Shown: positions 6,801 through 18,000, counted from the stretch's first letter. The stretch: 64,000 nucleotides of DNA from Eutreptiella sp. 'Long Island Sound 2002' (GCA_964036045.1 OZ038379.1:22754001-22818000), one strand, 5' to 3'. The notes: a model not told the origin generated them from the letters alone. A program made the numbers and translations.

Positions 6801-6892
6801 TTGTACTCCCTCCCCGAGAAAACGGAAGCTGCACTGGTGCATCACAGTCAAGGAGACGTGCGGGGCAGGCGCTGAGGAGGGGGGGGGGGGGA

Positions 6893-7216
6893 GGTTGGCA
6901 CAAGGCCTCGGTATCAGATTGTTTGCCTTTGGTGGCGCCTATTGGCCTCTCGCCACTGCTCATTCTGACCCTCTGTGGGCCCGAACGTGTTTTGGTTGTG
7001 TCAATGGAGCCCCTGGATGACTTGTCCTGTTTGACTACTCCAGGGTCGGCTGTCCCGGAGACGGGCCGTTGCCCGTGCCGTTGACCAGCTGCATCCAGAT
7101 ACACACTCTGAGTCCATGCTGGGTATGCCGACTTCAGCACTGACTTGTGCGCGCTGGGGTGTGCATCTGCAGGACAATTTTCCTGACAGGGGCTTCTAAC
7201 AACCACAACAATTCTT
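6893..7216. repeat. ~320-bp dispersed SINE-like repeat, copy 1
   Basis: Near-identical to 16590-16913; preceded by poly-G; AAC-rich end. Confidence 0.85.
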
Positions 7217-7653
7217 TCCCTTTTTTCTGTTCCTTCTCCTCCTTCTGCGCTCTGCACCGTTTTCGGCGAGCGCAGTCTGCCCTGTCCTGTTATCTCCCCT
7301 TGTTCGGCCCTTTCCCCCGGCCCAGTTTCTTCTCCACCCTCTCTATTCTTTCTGCCCTGAGGGGCCTTGGGTGGCGGGCGAGCATGTTGCTGTAGGGAGG
7401 TAGAGGAGGGGGCGGGGGAGGGGGAGTGGGAGTGGGTTCGTCACATTGAGGAGGGAGATCCTGCTCAAGGGGGCTTCTTGTTGGTGTCGGTGTGCTTGGT
7501 GTGGGTGGTTTTGGCCACTTGCTTCTGCTGGCCCACATATCCCAGTCTGTCCTGGGCGTAGTTGCATGCTGTTTGATGGCATGATGGCCTTAGCTGGCGC
7601 GGCGGTGGTAGACCATGCACGTAGGGCCCGCTGTCAGTCTAAGGGTTCGGGAC

Positions 7654-8220
7654 CAGGCTTCGTTTATAAGAGGGGGGGGGGCGGTATTTTGGACAAGACC
7701 CACCCACCCAACTTTGGACCCACCCACCCGACTTTTGACCCACCCAGACCCCCCCCCCCCCTCTTATAATTCTGTGGGGAGCATTTTTTGTGAACCACAT
7801 TGAAGCCAAGGCGCTCTCCCGGGTTCGGCATCCCCAAAGGGTGACACACCAAAAACTTCACAATACCAGGGTTCGAAGCAGGGATCTTTGAAATTGCAGT
7901 CAAGGTCCTTGACAACTGGGCTACCAACCAGCTCTGACAGATCTGTGCAACAAAGGGTCCACAGGTTTAACATGTTATCAAAAAAAGTCCGCCATGTGAA
8001 AAATTGCCACCTGCACACCTGCCACCTGCACAACGACACAACAGAAAGGGGCACCAGCAAACAGCCAGACAAGGCTCCTGTGACCAAAGAAAGAAGGTGT
8101 GGCAGGAGCCTAACCCAGGAAACCCTCGGAATTATAAGAGGGGGGGGGGGGTCCAGAGCTTTAGACCCCCCCACCCAGACCCCCCCCCCATTGCAACTTA
8201 ATTCTTATAAACGAAGCCTG
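7654..8220. mobile_element. hAT-like non-autonomous element with nested inverted modules and ~360-bp cargo
   Basis: 17-bp perfect TIR caggcttcgtttataag; flanks ttcgggac / tttgggac (7 of 8 match). Confidence 0.7.
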
Positions 8221-8959
8221 TTTGGGACCGGGGCTAGTTCGCCTTTGTACGCGTCCCCTCAGTTGGGAAGAGGGAGGAGTCCACGCCCCCCCCCCCTTCC
8301 CTGAAAAGTGTCTGTTGGTTCATCACCCAGGGCCCGTGGTGCCCCAAGCGTCTTTTCTGGACTGTCTTTTGCTGTCCTGGGCTGCCCTCTATTGTTGTTG
8401 CGTGGGTGAGTGCGTTCTGCCATTGTCAGTGTGGGTGTTGTTGCGGCGTTGGCAGAGCTGTAGGTGTGGTGCGGTGGGGGCCGGGGGGGGGGGGGGTCCA
8501 TTCTGAGTGGTGCCAGCGTTGCTGCTGGTGATGTGGTTTTTAGTGGCACTGGCAACCAAATCAGTCTCAATCTCCGAGTCCCAACGGGGCTGCGTCCGCC
8601 ATCGGTGACCCTATCCCTCAGTTGCCGGATCAACTATGGTTTGGTCGCCGCCAACATTAGTGCCTTGCCACTCTCTCATCTCCCCCACATCCCCATGCCC
8701 TTGTGTGTTTGTTGTGGTGTGTGGTATTCCGTGTTGTTGTGTGTGTTAGTGTCCATGCGTTCGCAACCACAGTTCTGCTGCTATGATGTTTGCGTGGTTT
8801 AGTTGGTCCATGAGTCTCACTGGGTCGTCCACTATGAAGTGTATCCCTTCTCCCACAATAAACACTTCAGGTGCTCATATCCTTTCCTCCGGTCACGGGG
8901 GCTGCCGCTAGCGAATGTGTGACCCCGAGGGGTGTGCAACCGTTTGGGGGTTGTATGGG

Positions 8960-9420
8960 GGGGGGGGGGGGGGAACCCTTGGTTGACCCAAACCTTGGGG
9001 GTCGGCGGGTCAGGCGGTCAGCCGCCGGGCTCCTGGGGGGGGGGGGGGGTCAGGGGGTACCCCAACATACGTACCTCAAAATGATCCCCTCGACATGCTA
9101 ATCATTTTGAATATACACAACTGGGGTAAAAATTTAAAAAAAATTGCCCATCAAGTAGGGCTCCCATGAGCCAAGGTCCAACCCGGAGGTCGGGTCAGGG
9201 TCAAAATCCTTTTTTGTATTTTTCATCCATTTTTGAATTCTCTGCGAAATTCTGAGTATAGACACAGAGGGTCAAACAAAAACATTTCCCCCTGCCATAG
9301 GCCTAAAACAAAATCTCCGGCGCCTTCGGCACCCACAAAACCCATTGTTCCGTACAACCATTTTGGGGTGTGTAGAGGGGTGGGGGGGGGGGGTCCTGAC
9401 CAAGAGCACCCCCCGTGCCT
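8960..9420. repeat. G-tract-bounded dispersed repeat inserted into the LINE endonuclease region
   Basis: gggtaccccaac..tacctcaaaatg..tcattttgaa is shared with 21410-21470; endonuclease-like coding resumes on both sides. Confidence 0.55.
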
Positions 9421-9914
9421 CCGGTACCCACACACAGCCTGCCACTGCCTGCACCACCTAGACTTTGTCTGGTCCTAGGAGGTACTTTCATGTTCCTCCA
9501 TTCGGGGAGTCTCCTTTCCACCCCCATCTCGTGTGTTCCTCAATATGCGGTCCCCTTGTAGCCTCAGTAGGTCTGTTGTGTACCCCCTCAATTTCTCTCC
9601 AAAAAGCAGTGGTCTGGTCGTATTTGTGTTGTATCCCTGTGGTGGCGGCGCGCCTGCCGGCTGCGGCTCTGCCCGTCAACTTTTTCTTGTTCCCCACACC
9701 CACGAACTCCATGTTTGTTCTGCCCCTTGGCCCCCTCTGTCTTCTTCTTTGCTTTGTCGCTGGGCCCGCTGTGGGGTCTCTCTGTGCGGCTCATTTTGTC
9801 CGCGGCAATTCGATCTGAAGCATGTCGGGTTGAACTGAAAGTTTGTGTGGTGTGGTTGTGGGGCTGGTGGGTTGTTCCCTCCGTGCCCAGCTGGTGTCCC
9901 TGTACTCCTCCGGT

Positions 9915-10275
9915 TCTCATATGCTCGGTTCAACCGCTTGAACAAGTCTATTGCTTTCTCCTTGTTGTTCTTGTTTTTGTCTGGGTGGAGTCTGAGAACC
10001 ATCTTCTTGTGTGCCGCCTTGCCTTCCTCCTTGGTTGCCCCTGGTGTGACCCCTAACTGGGCCTGCAGTCCGACCTCTGCAAAATCCGGTGGTAGGACTT
10101 CTACCAGCTCCACCTCCATGTTGATTGTCGGCTTCCGTTTGTTCACCCATACTCGCCTCTCTCCTCCCACCAGTAGTACTTGGGCCTTTCCATCCTCCAC
10201 TTCTTCAATTATTCCCCTACACCCCTCCAAGTCCCCTTGTTTCATTCCAACCAATTGCACTCCATGGCCCACCTC
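9915..10275 (-). pseudogene. KOW/SH3-like segment followed by DnaJ J-domain
   Basis: LGVTPGATKEEGKAAHKKMVLRLHPDK...FKRLNRAY. Confidence 0.85.
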
Positions 10276-11299
10276 TAGGTCCCCCCCACCTGTGCCCTGT
10301 GATTTGCGCCCACCGTTGTTTCCCTTGCTGCTGCACCTGCCTTCCTTGGCTGCTTTTCGTTGTCCTGTTCCCTTCCCTCTCATGCTCTTGTTTCGGTGGT
10401 CTTTTCCTTACTCTAATGGGGCTTCCTCTAAACTCTTCTCGCAAATGTTGCTCCTCTCCTGCCCTGTCCCTGCGATCACGCACTAGGCGGTGGACGAAAT
10501 CAGCTTCTTCTTCCCTGGGGCCGTGGTCTTGTCTTTTTGTTGTTCCTTCACCTCTTTCACTCGCTTCATTGTGGTCTTCTCCTACCGACACCGTTGTCGT
10601 TGCTTGTCTATCTCCTCCGACCGTTTTTACACCTGTGCTTTCTTGCACTTACACTGGAACTCCCGCTTCTCCCTCAGCACCTTCAAAGCCCAGGCAGTTG
10701 TGTACCCTGCACACTGCAGATGGACCCAGTGTCCCTGGCCAAACTGTACCGCCCAAACTGTACCGCCCGTTGGCCCTTCCGCACTGGTCTGTTGCACAGC
10801 CCACACGTGTGCTTGGGCCCTGCCCATCCTACCTTCCCTTTCTTTTTCTGAGACCAATGCTCTGGTCCCAGGGTAGAGGCCATCCCTACAAACAGTGTGT
10901 CTGTCTCTTGATCTGTGGAGTTTGTTGTCTCCTGAACTGAGGAGTCTGCTGTCTCTTGATATGTGGAGTCTGCTGTGTCTGCTGACGTCCTATCCTCTGC
11001 GTGGGGTTCCCTCTTCCACTCTCCCTGATCACCCTTCTCCCCTCTCACTGTTTCACTAGTGGTGTGCTCCGCTGCTCTGCCTTTTGGTTCCTCTGTACAT
11101 TGACTGTTGGGGCTCTCTTTTGCCCTCAAACTGTGGTCCTCGTCCTCTATATCTTCTCCTATCCCTTGCTACGACACTCCCCCTTGTTGCATCCACCATT
11201 TAACTGGTAACTGGATGTGGTTGGCCATCCTCCCAAACTCCCTCCAGGTGTCGGTGGTGGTCATGGGGGACCCCCGGTGCCCTTCGTGCCCTTGCAGCA

Positions 11300-11770
11300 C
11301 ACCTTGCTACTGCCTCTTGTCCCTCCCGGGTCAGCTTATAGGCTTTCAGGGCGCTGACCACCCCACAGCCCCCTCTACTGATCCAGCTCTGGACCATGGC
11401 TGTTGGTGCCCTTCCCTCTAGGAGGATAGACCTCAAGAGTATCCCCAGCGTGTTTGTGGAACAGACGTCTTGTGCCGAGAGCAGTGGCACGTGATTTGGG
11501 TGTGTGTGCACCCAACCCAACGACCAACCTCCCATGGCCCTTCCCCACCGAATCGCCCCCTGTAGCTCGCACTCTCCGACCACGCACTCTGTTTTTGCCT
11601 GCTGCTCATGCGGGGGGATTGTGAGTCCTTCCACCTTTACTCCCGTAGCTGTTTTGTCCTCCCACAACAACCCCATGGTTTCGTTTCTCTGTGCTGCCCG
11701 GGCTGTGACTGCCATGGTCCACTGGCGGAGGAGGTCCTCATGCATTTCCACTACACACTCCTTCTGGTCC
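11300..11770 (-). pseudogene. JAB/MPN+ (AMSH-like) metalloprotease domain
   Basis: E...H-x-H-x7-S-x2-D JAMM motif: WVHTHPNHVPLLSAQD. Confidence 0.8.
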
Positions 11771-11950
11771 TCCCTGGTTCCTGCTGTCCCCTTTGGGCCG
11801 TTTCTGTTTCTGGGGTTGTGTGTTCTGCCCGCGTTTGCTCTCCTCCTTCCTCTTTGTCCCGTTGCGACTGGCCTTGGTCTTTCTGGTTCTCTTGATCTCC
11901 GTGCCCTCCACGGGGAGGGGGGAGGCGGGGAAGCGGGGGCAGCTGGCCAC

Positions 11951-12079
11951 CTGCGGGTCCTGCTTGTTGAAGGCCTTGGCCAATTTGTTGAACTCTGAGG
12001 ATGTAAGGCCCAGCATCGAGAGGTCCTCCGAAGGGGCGGTGTTGGGGATGGGCAGCAGATCCCGGACAAAATTGGAGAC
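11951..12079 (-). CDS. Alpha-kinase post-kinase exon
   Basis: VSNFVRDLLPIPNTAPSEDLSMLGLTSSEFNKLAKAFNKQDPQ; cattcag / gtggcc. Confidence 0.7.
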
Positions 12080-15000
12080 CTGAATGCAAGGGTTGGTGGG
12101 GCATCAGAGGGCAAGGCGGTCTGTATACAGCAAAGAAAACTGGAGCAGGGGAGGTGTGGGGTCATGCACGGAGTCTTTTTGACCTGCAGGGTACAGGACG
12201 GTACCTCAGGTGCCCCCTGCCGTGCGCAGACAGCGTGGACACTCCTGACGTGCCAAATACACTCAGGCCGAATGAAACACCGAGTAAGGGCTGCCCCTGC
12301 GGCCATGAAGGAGTAACAATGGCAGCCATCCGCCCCCAAACACCTCCGGCGCATCCATGGCGTCCGTAGGTGTCAGAGTGTGGTATGGGTCCGGGTGTTG
12401 GTCCAGAGTGTTGTTGGTGGTGGTTGGGGGTGTTGCTGGTCAGGCCTCCTCCAGGTGCCGGAGGTGTCTTCAGACCGCCCGGAGACATTCACTGCTTGCC
12501 GCCGATGTCTGGACTACCCTTCAGAGACACCTGCCAGGATGGGCTTGAGGTATTGCCCGGGCACTTGCGCAAGGCCACAGCCACACCTGGAATGTCTTGC
12601 TGTCGGCGGTTGAATTGGTTCGCCCCTTCCAGGGCTGCCGTGGCATTTTGGTCCCATCCACAACCTGGCGGCCGTTCGTCGGAGGAAGCCCCAGCATTTC
12701 GCAAAGGGGGTTGCAGCGATGCGTGCGCAGGAACTGCTGGATGCCACTGTCCCCGCAGTTGCCTTGCCCGAAGCCCTGCGAACGGCAGGATCCAAGGCGA
12801 TAGTAGTCCTGCCAGCGCCCGACAAGCCTGTCCAACCTTCACCCCTTGTGAGCAGCAGGAGAGGGAAAGGGGTCCTTTGACTTGATGGGGCCTGATCGAG
12901 CCCCTCCGCCCAAAAGAGAGGTCAATCAACAACCACCCCCCCCAGGGTCCCCACAGCCGAAAAACACGCCATCTTTATGAAAATGGCTGAAAATTGCACA
13001 AACTGTCACTACGTAGACACCAGCATTGCTACCAAAATCCCGCCGGGGACCCGTCCTGAAAGCGGGGTCATGCGCGACAGCTTGATGCCTGGGCAGATCC
13101 AAAAGGCCCAGCCGGGGCTATTTGTGCTGCCTTTCTTACTGGTGAAATGCTCCCCTTGGAGTAATTCCCCCCTCCACTGTACCTGAGGGACAAAGAAAAT
13201 GGCGGACTTCATGCGAAGCATTTTGCATCAGACCTTACAGGCTTCAAGGCACAGTGCCGGGCATGCGTTTCCTGTGCTGCCCACACTCCCCTTCCTCCCC
13301 ACTGATGCTTCTCAGGGGTCCTTGTCTGTTTTTTTTTCCTGACACCCACTCACACGGTGGGATGGGGGGGGGGGGGGGCTTGCTTGAGCAGTGGGGTTCA
13401 AGGGGTAAGGGGACCGCCCCCCGGCCGCCAGAATGTACCTAATACCCAGCAAATGGAAAAATTGTTGGACAATGACCCATTCAGTGCATGGAAATGTGGC
13501 ATTGTCAACAGGAAACGAAGCAAGATCTTCATTCTCGGCCAATTCAGGGTTCCCTCACCATACCAACACACAACAAATACAAGGAAGCGAGACATTGCAG
13601 ATCACCAGCCATTGCCAACTCTTTGTTTTGTTTGTACAAACACTTCGCTGCATTGCATGAGATTCATGCGGCAGACAAGGTACTGCATGGTCTCGTGCTG
13701 CCATTTCCCGCGCCACAATGACAAACTCGCGTTGCCATTGGTGCGCTCAAAAACAGTGTGGAACCTGCTTTTTGCACATCGTTGGGTGCTATCCTTCAAC
13801 CTAAAACAAAGCAGTGTGTCAGTTACATCTTCACATTTCACATGGGGCAGCGGTTCGGCTGGGAAGCGGAAATACACAGACAACGAGCAGTGGGTCATGG
13901 TAATCTGCAAGACAATGAACATAGAAGACACATGGAACAATAACTAAACACTCTTTCATATGCGCCGCAGGCGCAGAGAAACTTTTTTCCGGACACTGAA
14001 AAAAGTGCCCAGGTTTAACCCAGATTTTCAGCTGAGCGGAGGAAGGAGGGGGGGGAGGGGGCCTCTGGATCAAGAGGGACACGCGAGGACCAAGGGGGGA
14101 AAAGTTTTCAGCCCAGGCCGCACTTGAAAACAAGAGGCTGAAGGAAGCAAGCGGGGAAGACTTTGTGTGGCCACGCGAAAGATTCCGTGCTCAAAAGGTG
14201 AACAAGCACGCACACCTGTGCCAACCAGCATATTGACACCCCCCCCTCCCCTCAGGGCCTTTTTTTAATTTTTATTCTGGCAGGGGGGGGGGGTTCCCCC
14301 CTGGGCCCTCATGCACTCTCCGGGACAGATATGTATGAAGACGCGCGCACAGGCAACGTATCCGCGTATACGTTTACGCGTGTATGTATAGTCTGTCGAC
14401 ACTGTGCATAGTTTGTAGACACTGTGCACATACACGTTTAGCTGGGTATAGTCTGTAGACACTGCGCACCACAAGTAGACGCGGCCTGCTCATTTTAGAC
14501 ACTGTCGGCATGCTGTAGCCGTGAAAAGAGAATATTTGGGAACAGGGCTGAAGGCCCCGTCCCTAAAAACCAGTCTGCTAACGGCGCTTACCCATGCACA
14601 AGGGCATGTATATGCGTATACGTATACGCGTATACTTTTGTTGTTGCTTCCTGAGGCACCTTTTCAGCGACGCATTGGTCACAACAGCACAGCACCTCGC
14701 TCGCCATGAGGATTGGGATGCCCACGGGGGGGGGGGCTATGTGTGCATGTTGGAAATTGTGTGTGGGAGGCTTGGCGGGGGGGAGGGGGGCTGGGGATGC
14801 GTTGGGAGGGGCACACTTGGTCATGTACACTTCGTGCCCCTTCCCTGTCCTGCAAAAGTACAACATCAGGCTCGGACTGCGGGCCAAGCGTATGCACACT
14901 GCACACCCGCCCATCCGGAGTGTGGATCTGAGGATCGGTGTACATGTCGCCCACGCCCTGGATGTCCACGATCATGATGCGGTGTAAGGTGTGCTCCCAT

Positions 15001-18000
15001 GAGAAGTGGCTGAAACACTGTGACAGCGGTACAAATGCACGGCCGTCCGGAATGCGGACCCGCTTGTGCAGCGGTGCACATGATGCAGTCCTACCCCCCA
15101 CACACTTGTCCAAACAACGGTAAAAACACCAAACATTGCGGAAACAACACCGCACGATGGACACGCCTCTGTATGCACGCAGTACAAAGAGCACATGGTG
15201 GGCTCTGGGGCTGGCTGGGGCAGGCGGCCAGGGAGGCCAGAATGCATGAATCATCCAATCATCCACCAGGTCCTTAGTCAAATACAACTCGCCACCAAAA
15301 TCACCTGCAAACCATGCAAAACTGACACGCAGCATAACAAAAAAAAGGGGGGGAAACCGCCACTTTCATGGTTCCAAAATGTTGCGGAAACAATGCCGCG
15401 TGTTGTTTGGACAAGCCGTGGGACATGGGGTGGGGGGGGGGCATGATACAGTGTGTTCAACAAACCTCAGCCCCCCCCCTCCCCGCCGCCGGGCGACATT
15501 CCGTCCACTCCTCCGTTCAGACAAAGGGAGTCTTACAGTAGGGCTCTCTCATGTTCGTTTCGCCCTTTCTGTGTTTGTGCTGATGTGTTGCATTGTTTCC
15601 CAAAAATTCCCTGGGCTGCGTTCGGATTCCTCTGTCCCCTCCCACTGTGCGCTCCGGGGAGCCCCCTCGGCCCACACACCTAATCCCACTCACGTATCCT
15701 CTTACCAGAGGGGCCCCAAAACGTATTCGGCGTGTCAGGGGGCGGGGGTCTCCCCCTTCAGTGAGGGCATCCCGGGAGGACGCCACATGCAAAACGATAA
15801 CCTGCCGCGGCTTTGTGCCTCCGACTGAACCGCTTCCTAAAGCTCTCTGCAGACAGCTTTGTTCCACACCACAGTCTTCCGGAGGTTCCATCCACACAGT
15901 TTGTCTGCGGGGTGGATATGCCCAACCGGACCTGAAAAACGGTGCCTGTACCGGCTTCTCCTTATACCCTCATAGATTCGCCCCCCCCCCCCCTTCCCGA
16001 CAAAAATGGGGGGATTGTCTCTTACACACCCGCAAGAAGGCAGCAAGCGGTGGTGCATTTCTGGTCACACGTCGCCTGTGAGGCCGTGTGTCTCATCTCC
16101 GCACCACCTACACCACCGGTGTGCCCGATGGACATGCGTCGTGTTGTGAGTGTCTCTGGGCTGTGCGTTTCTGAAGGAGTGTGCCAGGAGGACTGTGTGT
16201 TGGGGAGGGGCGGTGGGAGGGGTGTGGTGTTGTGGGTGAGAGAGGAATGCTGTGCCACAGCTCACACTTGCCGCTGGGTTCCTTCAGCCCGTTGTCACCA
16301 AGCACAGCCAAGCGGAACCTCCAAAACCCTCCCTCTTGGTCGGCGTGCGTGCTTCCCCCCGCCGGCAGGGGGTAGGAGGCTGGGGTCCACCATCAAAAAA
16401 ATCTGTGACTTTGCCCAGAAACCGTCCACACCTCAAGACAGCCCCCACCGGCCTCATTTGACGAACAACTGCCACACGACACCCCATCGTCCAGCACTGA
16501 ACACTCGTGTTGAGGACAATTTCGCAAGCGAAATGCCACAATGATGTGCACGGGCAATGCCTCCATTCTTTTCGGCCGGGGGGGGGGGGGGTTGGCACAA
16601 GGCCTCGGTATCAGATTGTTTGCCTTTGGTGGCGCCTATTGGCCTCTCGCCACTGCTCATTCTGACCCTCTGTGGGCCCGAACGTGTTTTGGTTGTGTCA
16701 ATGGAGCCCCTGGATGACTTGTCCTGTTTGACTACTCCAGGGTCGGCTGTCCCGGAGATGGGCTGTTGCCCGTGCCGTTGACCAGCTGCATCCAGGTGCA
16801 CACTCCGAGTCCATGCTGGGTTTGCCGACTTCAGCACTGACTTGTGCGCGCTGGGGTGTGCATCTGCAGGACAATTTTCCTGACAGGGGCTTCTAACAAC
16901 CACAATGATTCTTGGGAGGAGGCTGGGGGCTCTCCTCCTACCGCACCGGGCGTGTCTCTCAGCTTTGACCGGACAGTGGACTCCTTGGCAGCAGGGGAGG
17001 GAGGTGCTCAGCCTCCAGACCATTGAGCACATCGCCCCTGCCCTCACCTGTGGCACTGCCGCTTCCATCCACACCTGCGGGGTATTCCGAGCGTGAGGTT
17101 GAACGAAGCCAAAGTTGTTGTTGTGCTTGACGTAATTCGCGGGGTTGATGTATGGTTCCACAGCCAACACCTGCAAGGGACAGCACCGCTTCTACAGCGT
17201 GCCTACTCACTGGTCCACATGTAGAGGCATGCGTGAGGGACAAGGGTTGGGGTGAGAGTGAGGGTGCAAGTGCGCATGAAGGATGCACAGGTGTCAGGGT
17301 GAGGGACGGGTGAAGATTAGGAAGGGCTGTGCATCATGGGACGTCTCTGACACATGGAGGTACCTCTGCCTACTGCCATTCCGGGCTGATCCTGAGTCCC
17401 GGTATGACAGTGTATGGCTCAAAATAGGCTTAAACCACTTGTTTGAGCACCCCAAGTGGTCAAGGAACAATTTTGAAAAACTCGTCTTTGTGCACTTTTG
17501 GACCCACAGGTGACCCCTGTAACCCAACCCTAGCACGTGCACCGTGCCTGTTGCACCACTCTGTGGCGCCCATGGGGCACTGAAGGGACTTGCAAATGGT
17601 GCCTGACAAAACCCTGATGGGAAAAAGGCATCCCTCACAAATGGTGCCCTGGGGCGTCACCTGCCTGTCCTCCCCAACAACCCTGCCTGTCCCTCCGTGC
17701 CACATGAAGCTGGAAAAGCTGGCAAATTTTGCAGATTTTAATGGGTGCCTGGTGTCATAACTGGGGCCTGAGCATGCAAGTGACCCCGTTGGACATATCC
17801 TGGCAGTCAACCAGTGGCCGGCTGATCTTGTTTAATGATGTTGTCCACCGGAAACTTCAGTGAGCAGGTCGGTCGGTGGGACGTGGCGGTGGCACACTGT
17901 GTTTGTGCCCTTCGAGGTGCCCTCACTCCATGTGAGGGAGGCAGCATCACCTCCTCATTCCCAGAACACAGCAGGGCTGCAGGGGGGGGGGGGGGGATGA

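Follow-up and report, generated by a model that had tools for sequence, protein, structure and literature searches.

A probable Chlamys-type Penelope-like retrotransposon with a predicted JAMM deubiquitinase and J-domain module in a Eutreptiella assembly

The locus and the question

The stretch of 64,000 nucleotides analyzed here (hereafter the window; GCA_964036045.1, OZ038379.1:22754001-22818000) comes from the assembly of Eutreptiella sp. 'Long Island Sound 2002'. Its minus strand encodes a JAB/MPN domain, a PHD-like zinc finger, a KOW-like segment and a J-domain, and the question is which kind of element combines these domains and what they may do for it. The original prediction, made from the sequence alone, described a single-ORF element resembling a long interspersed nuclear element (LINE), with the JAB-PHD-KOW-DnaJ module N-terminal to an APE endonuclease and the reverse transcriptase (RT) further downstream. 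Full-length copies in the same genome refute this description. The element is very probably a Penelope-like retrotransposon (PLE) of the N-terminal-endonuclease (Chlamys-type) group, and the window holds an old, dead, 5'-truncated member of it. The module is a feature well beyond chance.

Three neighbouring open reading frames (ORFs) were found on the minus strand at 9676-12354. The ORF at 11203-12354 ends in the JAB/MPN domain (Pfam: Prok-JAB, E 1.6e-4; JAB, E 0.012), in which the JAMM motif HTHPNHVPLLSAQD (HxHx7SxxD) is intact at 11467-11508 and the upstream Glu (ETMGLL) is located at 11680-11682. The ORF at 9676-10383 carries the KOW-like segment, a weak match, and the J-domain (Table 1). 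Pfam matches and motif reads placed the four domains in the minus-strand order that had been predicted, and introns were indeed absent from the module stretch.

Young full-length copies and their architecture

All comparisons were made on natural copies and unaltered ORF pieces. A search of the 2.28-Gb genome with the KOW-J ORF returned 4,462 first-look candidates. Scoring covered 150 of these, and the output listed 151 matches. Among the matches listed was a subfamily with about 47% protein identity to the window KOW-J ORF, whose longest uninterrupted frames reach 2,709 aa, in agreement with the prediction of a multi-copy family with one giant ORF. The family has amplified recently, and three of its young copies were 99.2-99.4% identical to each other.

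The full element measures about 8.7 kb and encodes one polyprotein. Counted from the first Met past the junction with a pseudo-long terminal repeat (pseudo-LTR) it has about 2,170 aa, while the open frame as a whole can extend to 2,709 aa. Its parts follow in the order GIY-YIG endonuclease (without a CCHH finger), CxC motif, RT with a long insertion between motifs A and B, CCCH finger, acidic linker, JAB domain, PHD-like finger, one or two KOW-like barrels, J-domain and a conserved tail of about 200 aa. In the reference copy (L024:796-8913:-; 2,705-aa frame) the JAB domain was located at aa 1885-2008 and DnaJ at aa 2445-2490, and the roughly 1,500 aa upstream of the module displayed RT-like motifs. 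The motif positions were aa 625 (GIY-YIG-like), 919 (SCNC), 1098 (LPYIYGIWK), 1197 (GDFVAMYPS), 1293 (GFGMGLK) and 1331 (YRFVDD) in the endonuclease and RT part, and aa 1503 (CCCH), 1909/1967 (JAMM), 2150 (CGLCC) and 2466 (HPD) in the C-terminal part. The fusion of a predicted AMSH-like JAMM protease, PHD-like finger, KOW-like barrel and J-domain to transposition enzymes was thus seen directly in full-length frames.

This layout is the reverse of the predicted one. The module comes after the RT in intact copies, and the ORF stops about 240 aa past the J-domain, with nothing enzymatic in between. An RT downstream of the module had been expected; its absence from the copy in the window is explained by the truncation of the copy at about 11910 and not by an RT placed downstream. 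The window copy is intronless and 5'-truncated as LINE copies are, and the two strings on which the LINE-like reading was built, TW..(V)RG near 9710 and VGGD near 8660, can be read there, but neither belongs to an endonuclease. The TW codons do lie in frame with the J-domain ORF. However, the string taken as TW(N)VRG, the first APE motif, reads TWSSWVWG in that frame and aligns with FWSFLWGS/TWSSWLWG in a segment right after the J-domain which is kept in every subfamily and is not of the APE type. VGGD sits in the 3' untranslated region (UTR), beyond the stop codon. Exo_endo_phos matches were found neither in the window ORFs nor in the 2,705-aa frame.

The CCCH finger of the reference copy (CWYGWRCRRKSCPFEH, aa 1503-1518) directly follows the RT thumb and lies outside the window copy. 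Pfam zf-CCCH_2 was detected in the relatives P0010 and P0167, where it holds the corresponding place between RT thumb and OTU domain. Downstream of the main ORF there are further ORFs of about 350 aa that had no Pfam matches; a coding role for them was rejected and they were treated as chance ORFs of the 3' UTR, one that was checked extending beyond the element end. The young JAB-bearing copies cluster in local arrays (G000 C18:13.15-13.35 Mb, C25:12.48-12.58 Mb, C22:16.08-16.44 Mb, C8:70.73-70.90 Mb and C13:43.83-43.94 Mb), a pattern consistent with partial tandems or with copies inserting into one another's (C)n tails.

Endonuclease and reverse transcriptase

The endonuclease and RT part (981 aa) was used in an exhaustive phmmer search that yielded 800 relatives, and a consensus and profile were built from 53 of them with the reference copy as first sequence. 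RT motifs 1-7 were present in the consensus, which contained GIY...YxG with downstream E and N, CxC, DK(A)xHN, LPYLYxxxKxHK...RxIAG, DFxTMY, GIPMGT..AP.LANL and RxIDD. The N-terminus of the profile (positions 6-99) matched the GIY-YIG catalytic domain of I-TevI (1ln0; E 2.6e-5), and Pfam GIY-YIG was detected upstream of the RT region in the relatives P0023, P0040 and P0087. In the reference copy the GIY-YIG motif precedes RT motif C, which makes the endonuclease N-terminal. The first ~120 residues of its endonuclease region contain no cysteines, and therefore neither a CCHH finger nor a CX2-5CxxC linker finger is present there. The CxC motif of this copy (SCNC) is conserved in the consensus.

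An AF2 model for the RT reached a predicted local distance difference test score (pLDDT) of 82 and a predicted template modelling score (pTM) of 0.72. In a Foldseek search of the PDB with this model, the top 16 matches were all telomerase RT (TERT; E 4.6e-10 to 4e-5), followed by group II intron RTs, and no LINE RT appeared among the top 50. The motif A Asp (D579) and the motif B Gly (G674) are 95 residues apart, and the model places a helix, a hairpin and another helix between them, resembling the insertion in fingers domain (IFD).

An N-terminal GIY-YIG endonuclease together with a telomerase-like RT fold indicates a PLE and not a LINE or other non-LTR element, and a poly-C tail and pseudo-LTRs (see below) also contradict the LINE-like reading, to which we give practically no chance. 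Telomerase has its closest relatives in the PLEs, whose mechanism is still poorly known.

Element ends, pseudo-LTRs and targets

The 3' end of the young unit reads ...CATGCCAAAA plus a C run whose length varies, giving a CAAAA(C)n end. In front of each of ten full-length copies lay a duplicate of that copy's 3' end, beginning at a variable point. Judged by their sequence, these upstream pieces are partial-tandem pseudo-LTRs and not true LTRs. In the C7 copy the piece measures 965 bp and is joined to the body at ...CCAAAACCCCC|ACATACC. Individual examples show insertion at microsatellites of the (C)n or (CA)n type: one 5'-truncated copy directly follows (CA)n(C)n, and a (C)12 tract adjoins the C7 copy, which has the repeat TTTT(GGTCCA) at either end. 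No hammerhead ribozyme at E up to 1, nor any other meaningful RNA family, was found with Rfam in 20 kb of a full-length copy including its pseudo-LTR and 3' UTR.

These features agree with those published for Chlamys, the PLEs with N-terminal GIY-YIG known from green algae, Chara, Selaginella and Physarum (Craig, Yushenova, Rodriguez and Arkhipova, 2021; PMC8557442). Chlamys elements have a GIY-YIG domain without CCHH, a CxC motif, a DK motif, an IFD and no hammerhead; they also show pseudo-LTRs, 5' truncation and (CA)n and (C)n targets (PMC8557442). The present elements share the N-terminal GIY-YIG without CCHH, CxC, an IFD-like A-B insertion and the absence of a hammerhead, and in addition partial-tandem pseudo-LTRs, frequent 5' truncation, (C)n/(CA)n targets and long units with accessory domains; a DK-type motif is seen in their family consensus but reads D-R in the reference copy. 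Published Chlamys units measure 3.3-8.2 kb, with PHD, SAP and, in Chlamys-1_cBra, a Josephin-like protease as accessory domains (PMC8557442). At ~8.7 kb, the present unit reaches or exceeds the upper limit of this range, and it differs by a much larger C-terminal extension (~820 aa) with the AMSH-like JAMM domain, PHD-like finger, KOW-like barrels and J-domain. The words JAB, DnaJ, ubiquitin and Euglen- do not occur in the text of Craig et al. (2021; PMC8557442), and N-terminal-endonuclease PLEs would gain a new host group if the host attribution holds. Truncated Chlamys models had been labelled as non-LTR/L1 in Repbase (PMC8557442), and the window copy is an example of how such fragments come to be misread as LINEs.

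Canonical Penelope/Poseidon, Neptune and Nematis elements likewise have a TERT-related RT, GIY-YIG, pseudo-LTRs and 5' truncation. However, their endonuclease is C-terminal with CCHH and their pseudo-LTRs contain hammerheads, while the endonuclease is N-terminal here and no hammerhead was detected by Rfam.

The C-terminal module and its conservation

The JAB domain of the young family matched AMSH-like Sst2 (4msd) and AMSH-LP in sequence (E 1.3e-5), and the top 15 fold matches were all AMSH, AMSH-LP or Sst2, with identities of 20-24%. The catalytic E...HxHx7SxxD is intact in both the window copy and the young family. In the HMMER alignment, a Cys stands opposite the AMSH His located two residues past the catalytic Asp, and C...HxxHxH follows downstream. 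This suggests a candidate AMSH-type second zinc site in the young-family JAB. The window JAB has a Cys at D+2 followed by C...HxHHxH, a possible second zinc site as well. Compared with AMSH, AMSH-LP and Sst2 (PDB 2znr, 3rzu, 4msd), the Glu, HxH, Ser and Asp are conserved and candidate second-zinc ligands are present; the present domain differs in its low identity, in having no MIT domain or ESCRT context, and in having Cys instead of His as the first ligand of the second site.

The HPD of the J-domain is conserved in all subfamilies and also in relatives with OTU or USP proteases. Pfam recognized DnaJ in the young copy (E 7e-7) as well as in the window copy, and in a model of the young-copy module the J-domain core had a pLDDT of 93-96. 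The first KOW-like barrel had block means of ~69-87 in that model, whereas confidence was too low for fold claims on the PHD-like finger, the second KOW-like barrel and the ~200-aa tail. The best PDB sequence matches of the PHD-like finger were PHD fingers, though not significant (E 0.22); relatives carry Pfam PHD with E 6e-6 to 2e-4.

Is the module a part of the element, or a fragment of a host gene riding in it as a processed pseudogene or by passive transduction? Transposable elements do capture host fragments, and the nearest solved relatives of the JAB domain and the J-domain are cellular proteins. However, the module lies in frame with endonuclease and RT in dozens of intact frames of 2,500-2,709 aa, and it is kept, with the JAMM and HPD residues intact, between subfamilies of only 47-49% protein identity. 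Over JAB, PHD, KOW and tail, the ratio of nonsynonymous to synonymous substitutions (dN/dS) was 0.18-0.50 between the young family and copies with module pieces 62-82% identical in protein, even though the compared copies include neutral decay; these values show that the module has evolved under purifying selection. In distant relatives that share the backbone, another class of deubiquitinase stands together with DnaJ in the same place, which argues for a selected function and against a one-off capture. A host fragment is therefore very improbable, and the prediction that the locus is a retroelement fragment and not a host gene was supported.

Relatives with other proteases

The relative P0172 (1,983 aa, on a 6.2-kb environmental contig) is collinear with the reference copy at 36% identity from GIY-YIG through the RT thumb and carries USP/UCH (E 2e-32) and DnaJ (E 3e-19). 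OTU occurs together with DnaJ, and with CCCH or PHD, in P0002, P0007, P0010 and P0167, and together with PHD in P0004, P0013, P0052 and P0064; USP was detected in P0120 and P0132. Most of the protease-bearing relatives were found on short ENA, JGI/IMG or Logan contigs. P0120 (1,900 aa, RT and USP, 24% RT identity) is located on a 700-kb contig (L049, ENA ERZ25333236), and therefore protease-bearing PLEs are not confined to the present genome. A homologue search with the module itself (L024 aa 1870-2705) was length-filtered and says little on relatives; it returned one 96%-identical protein on an ENA contig.

The conserved residues, the dN/dS values and the protease swaps together argue that the cassette of putative deubiquitinase and J-domain, with or without PHD, forms a module kept by selection in this PLE lineage and is not a passive host fragment. 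Since the class of protease is exchanged while the J-domain is kept, the pattern suggests that selection has favoured manipulation of the host ubiquitin and Hsp70 systems during retrotransposition.

Ubiquitin-family proteases fused to transposition proteins were known before, and interference with host protein degradation is presumed for them. A Josephin-like protease occurs in Dualen non-LTR elements and in Chlamys-1_cBra, and OTU occurs in Helentrons (PMC8557442, PMC6431247). Those enzymes are cysteine-protease deubiquitinases, whereas the present element pairs a predicted JAMM zinc metalloprotease with a J-domain, and its relatives exchange the protease for OTU or USP in the same place and keep DnaJ. 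No PLE with a JAMM protease or a J-domain was found described in the open-access literature searched, in line with the prediction that the combination had not been reported.

A parallel for the J-domain exists outside retrotransposons. The large and small T antigens of polyomaviruses carry a J-domain, so that there too a mobile or viral element encodes its own HPD J-domain, presumably for host Hsp70. The homology is not known to extend beyond the J fold, and here the J-domain is part of a retrotransposon polyprotein.

Possible functions of the module

The element would insert by target-primed reverse transcription following a GIY-YIG nick at C-rich microsatellites, and partial tandems would arise from template jumps or read-through. 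The C-terminal module may manage host proteostasis and chromatin on behalf of the element. The JAMM domain may strip ubiquitin, probably of the K63 type, off the element protein or its ribonucleoprotein (RNP), off a host factor or off target chromatin; the PHD-like finger and KOW-like barrels may tether the protein to histone tails or nucleic acid; and the J-domain may recruit and activate host Hsp70 to fold or remodel a very large RNP. In its strongest form, the proposal is that a Chlamys-type lineage of this genome and of uncultured protists evolved an interchangeable cassette of a deubiquitinase (JAMM, OTU or USP, often with PHD) and a J-domain, and that this cassette is required for retrotransposition, both to escape ubiquitin-dependent restriction or turnover and to use host Hsp70 in RNP assembly or remodelling. 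We put this forward tentatively, at slightly less than an even chance.

The same element might instead use its module mainly on chromatin at the integration site, where the finger would read H3, the JAMM domain would remove ubiquitin from histones or repair factors, and the J-domain with Hsp70 would evict nucleosomes or repair proteins. PHD fingers recur beside the deubiquitinase in relatives, the KOW/SH3-like barrel and the CCCH finger suggest contacts with nucleic acid or chromatin, and JAMM enzymes acting on histone H2A ubiquitin exist (BRCC36 and MYSM1). However, the JAB domain is nearest to the endosomal, K63-specific AMSH/Sst2 group and not to BRCC36, and the PHD assignment is weak. We regard a mainly chromatin-directed role as rather unlikely.

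Several observations weigh against the reading of a Chlamys-type PLE with a selected proteostasis cassette. On the side of the element class, Pfam RVT_1 matched neither the 2,705-aa frame nor the RT segment alone, and single-sequence phmmer of this RT against the PDB returned nothing; the RT was recognized only through the 53-sequence profile and the fold search. The DK motif, DKAxHN in the family consensus, reads EDRGPHN (D-R) in the reference copy. The placement inside the Chlamys clade is a probable one, based on architecture, motifs and fold. On the side of the module, the matches behind the PHD and KOW assignments are weak (E 0.006-0.2), the overall pLDDT of the module model was poor (53), and the tail had no significant PDB sequence match and no recognizable fold in that low-confidence model. 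The functional roles suggested for the module, Hsp70 binding by the J-domain among them, are all deduced from domain families. Estuary metatranscriptome contigs carry 95-99%-identical fragments of the element, but these may be DNA carry-over and were not counted as transcription.

If the cassette is indeed required for retrotransposition, it would represent a retrotransposon-encoded toolkit for counter-defence and proteostasis that is new for PLEs. A very young, high-copy family with an intact polyprotein of more than 2,000 aa here combines the core enzymes with a J-domain and a predicted deubiquitinase of AMSH-like type, and the JAMM Glu or HxH residues and the HPD are concrete handles on the function of the module.

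The copy in the window

The copy occupies 6879-11910 on the minus strand (Table 1) and represents the 3' UTR together with roughly aa 1840-2705 of the full-length frame; in tblastn the full-length ORF of the reference copy was covered only at aa 1883-2701. Six sibling copies were 80-94% identical to it in DNA over aligned blocks, mostly 83-88%, and their start points vary. The longest of them, L039, matches the window up to 11910 in blastn and then runs on upstream into RT-coding sequence without counterpart in the window. The alignment end and the tblastn coverage therefore place the 5' truncation at about 11910, inside the linker.

The finger of this copy is split over two frames by a tandem duplication (GGGCGGTACAGTTT x2) at 10739-10768; a frame break by duplication had been predicted correctly, with a unit of 13 bp that proved to be 14 bp. 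In addition, a Cys of the finger is replaced by Phe (VQFGQGHW, compared with VQCGHGHW in sibling copies). The frameshifts, the duplication and the Cys-to-Phe change all mark the copy, as read from its sequence, as dead.

Table 1. Parts of the Penelope-like copy and nested insertions, in window coordinates.
Feature	Position	Strand	Basis
Remnant of acidic/low-complexity linker (between RT-CCCH and JAB) with truncation point	11761-11910	-	blastn against L039 ends at 11910
JAB/MPN metalloprotease domain, AMSH-like	11203-11760	-	Pfam; 49% identity to young-family JAB
PHD-like treble-clef zinc finger, inactivated	10645-10805	-	RAG2_PHD E 0.0061; CGLC...HLQC...CKC
KOW/SH3-like beta-barrel, weak assignment; one copy in the window, two in the young family	10132-10281	-	KOW5_SPT5 E 0.041
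J-domain (DnaJ), HPD at 9979-9987	9916-10056	-	Pfam DnaJ E 1.4e-10
Conserved post-J segment NFQFNPTxFRSN...TWSSWVWG	9679-9915	-	Alignment across subfamilies and with the full-length frame
C-terminal tail, first part, frameshifted into another frame	9418-9580	-	tblastn aa 2608-2661
Nested later insertion, ~520-bp high-copy repeat, not the element's own	8894-9417	not assigned	Absent from six siblings
C-terminal tail end (IVGEGIHFIVDD...), stop codon 8746-8748	8746-8893	-	tblastn aa 2658-2701, 55% identity
3' UTR ending ...TGCCAACCT(C)13, C run 6879-6891	6879-8745	-	Sibling alignments; tail read directly
Nested 562-bp repeat inside the 3' UTR, later insertion	7658-8219		Sibling alignments

Two short repeat families are represented by the nested insertions. 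The repeat at 8894-9417 is a member of a very abundant family of short repeats, for which the genome gave 4,147 first-look candidates at 82-87% identity; its ends are rich in C/G runs, and it may be a non-autonomous element. The repeat at 7658-8219 comes from a younger family of short repeats with 1,361 first-look candidates at 91-95% identity. It is bounded by ends of the type ...(C)nTCTTATAA and TTATAAGA(G)n, which suggests terminal inverted repeats. A second short match of the window to the pseudo-LTR/3' UTR part of the young family (frame aa 200-285) was detected at 16628-16900 on the minus strand and is probably a further PLE tail fragment.

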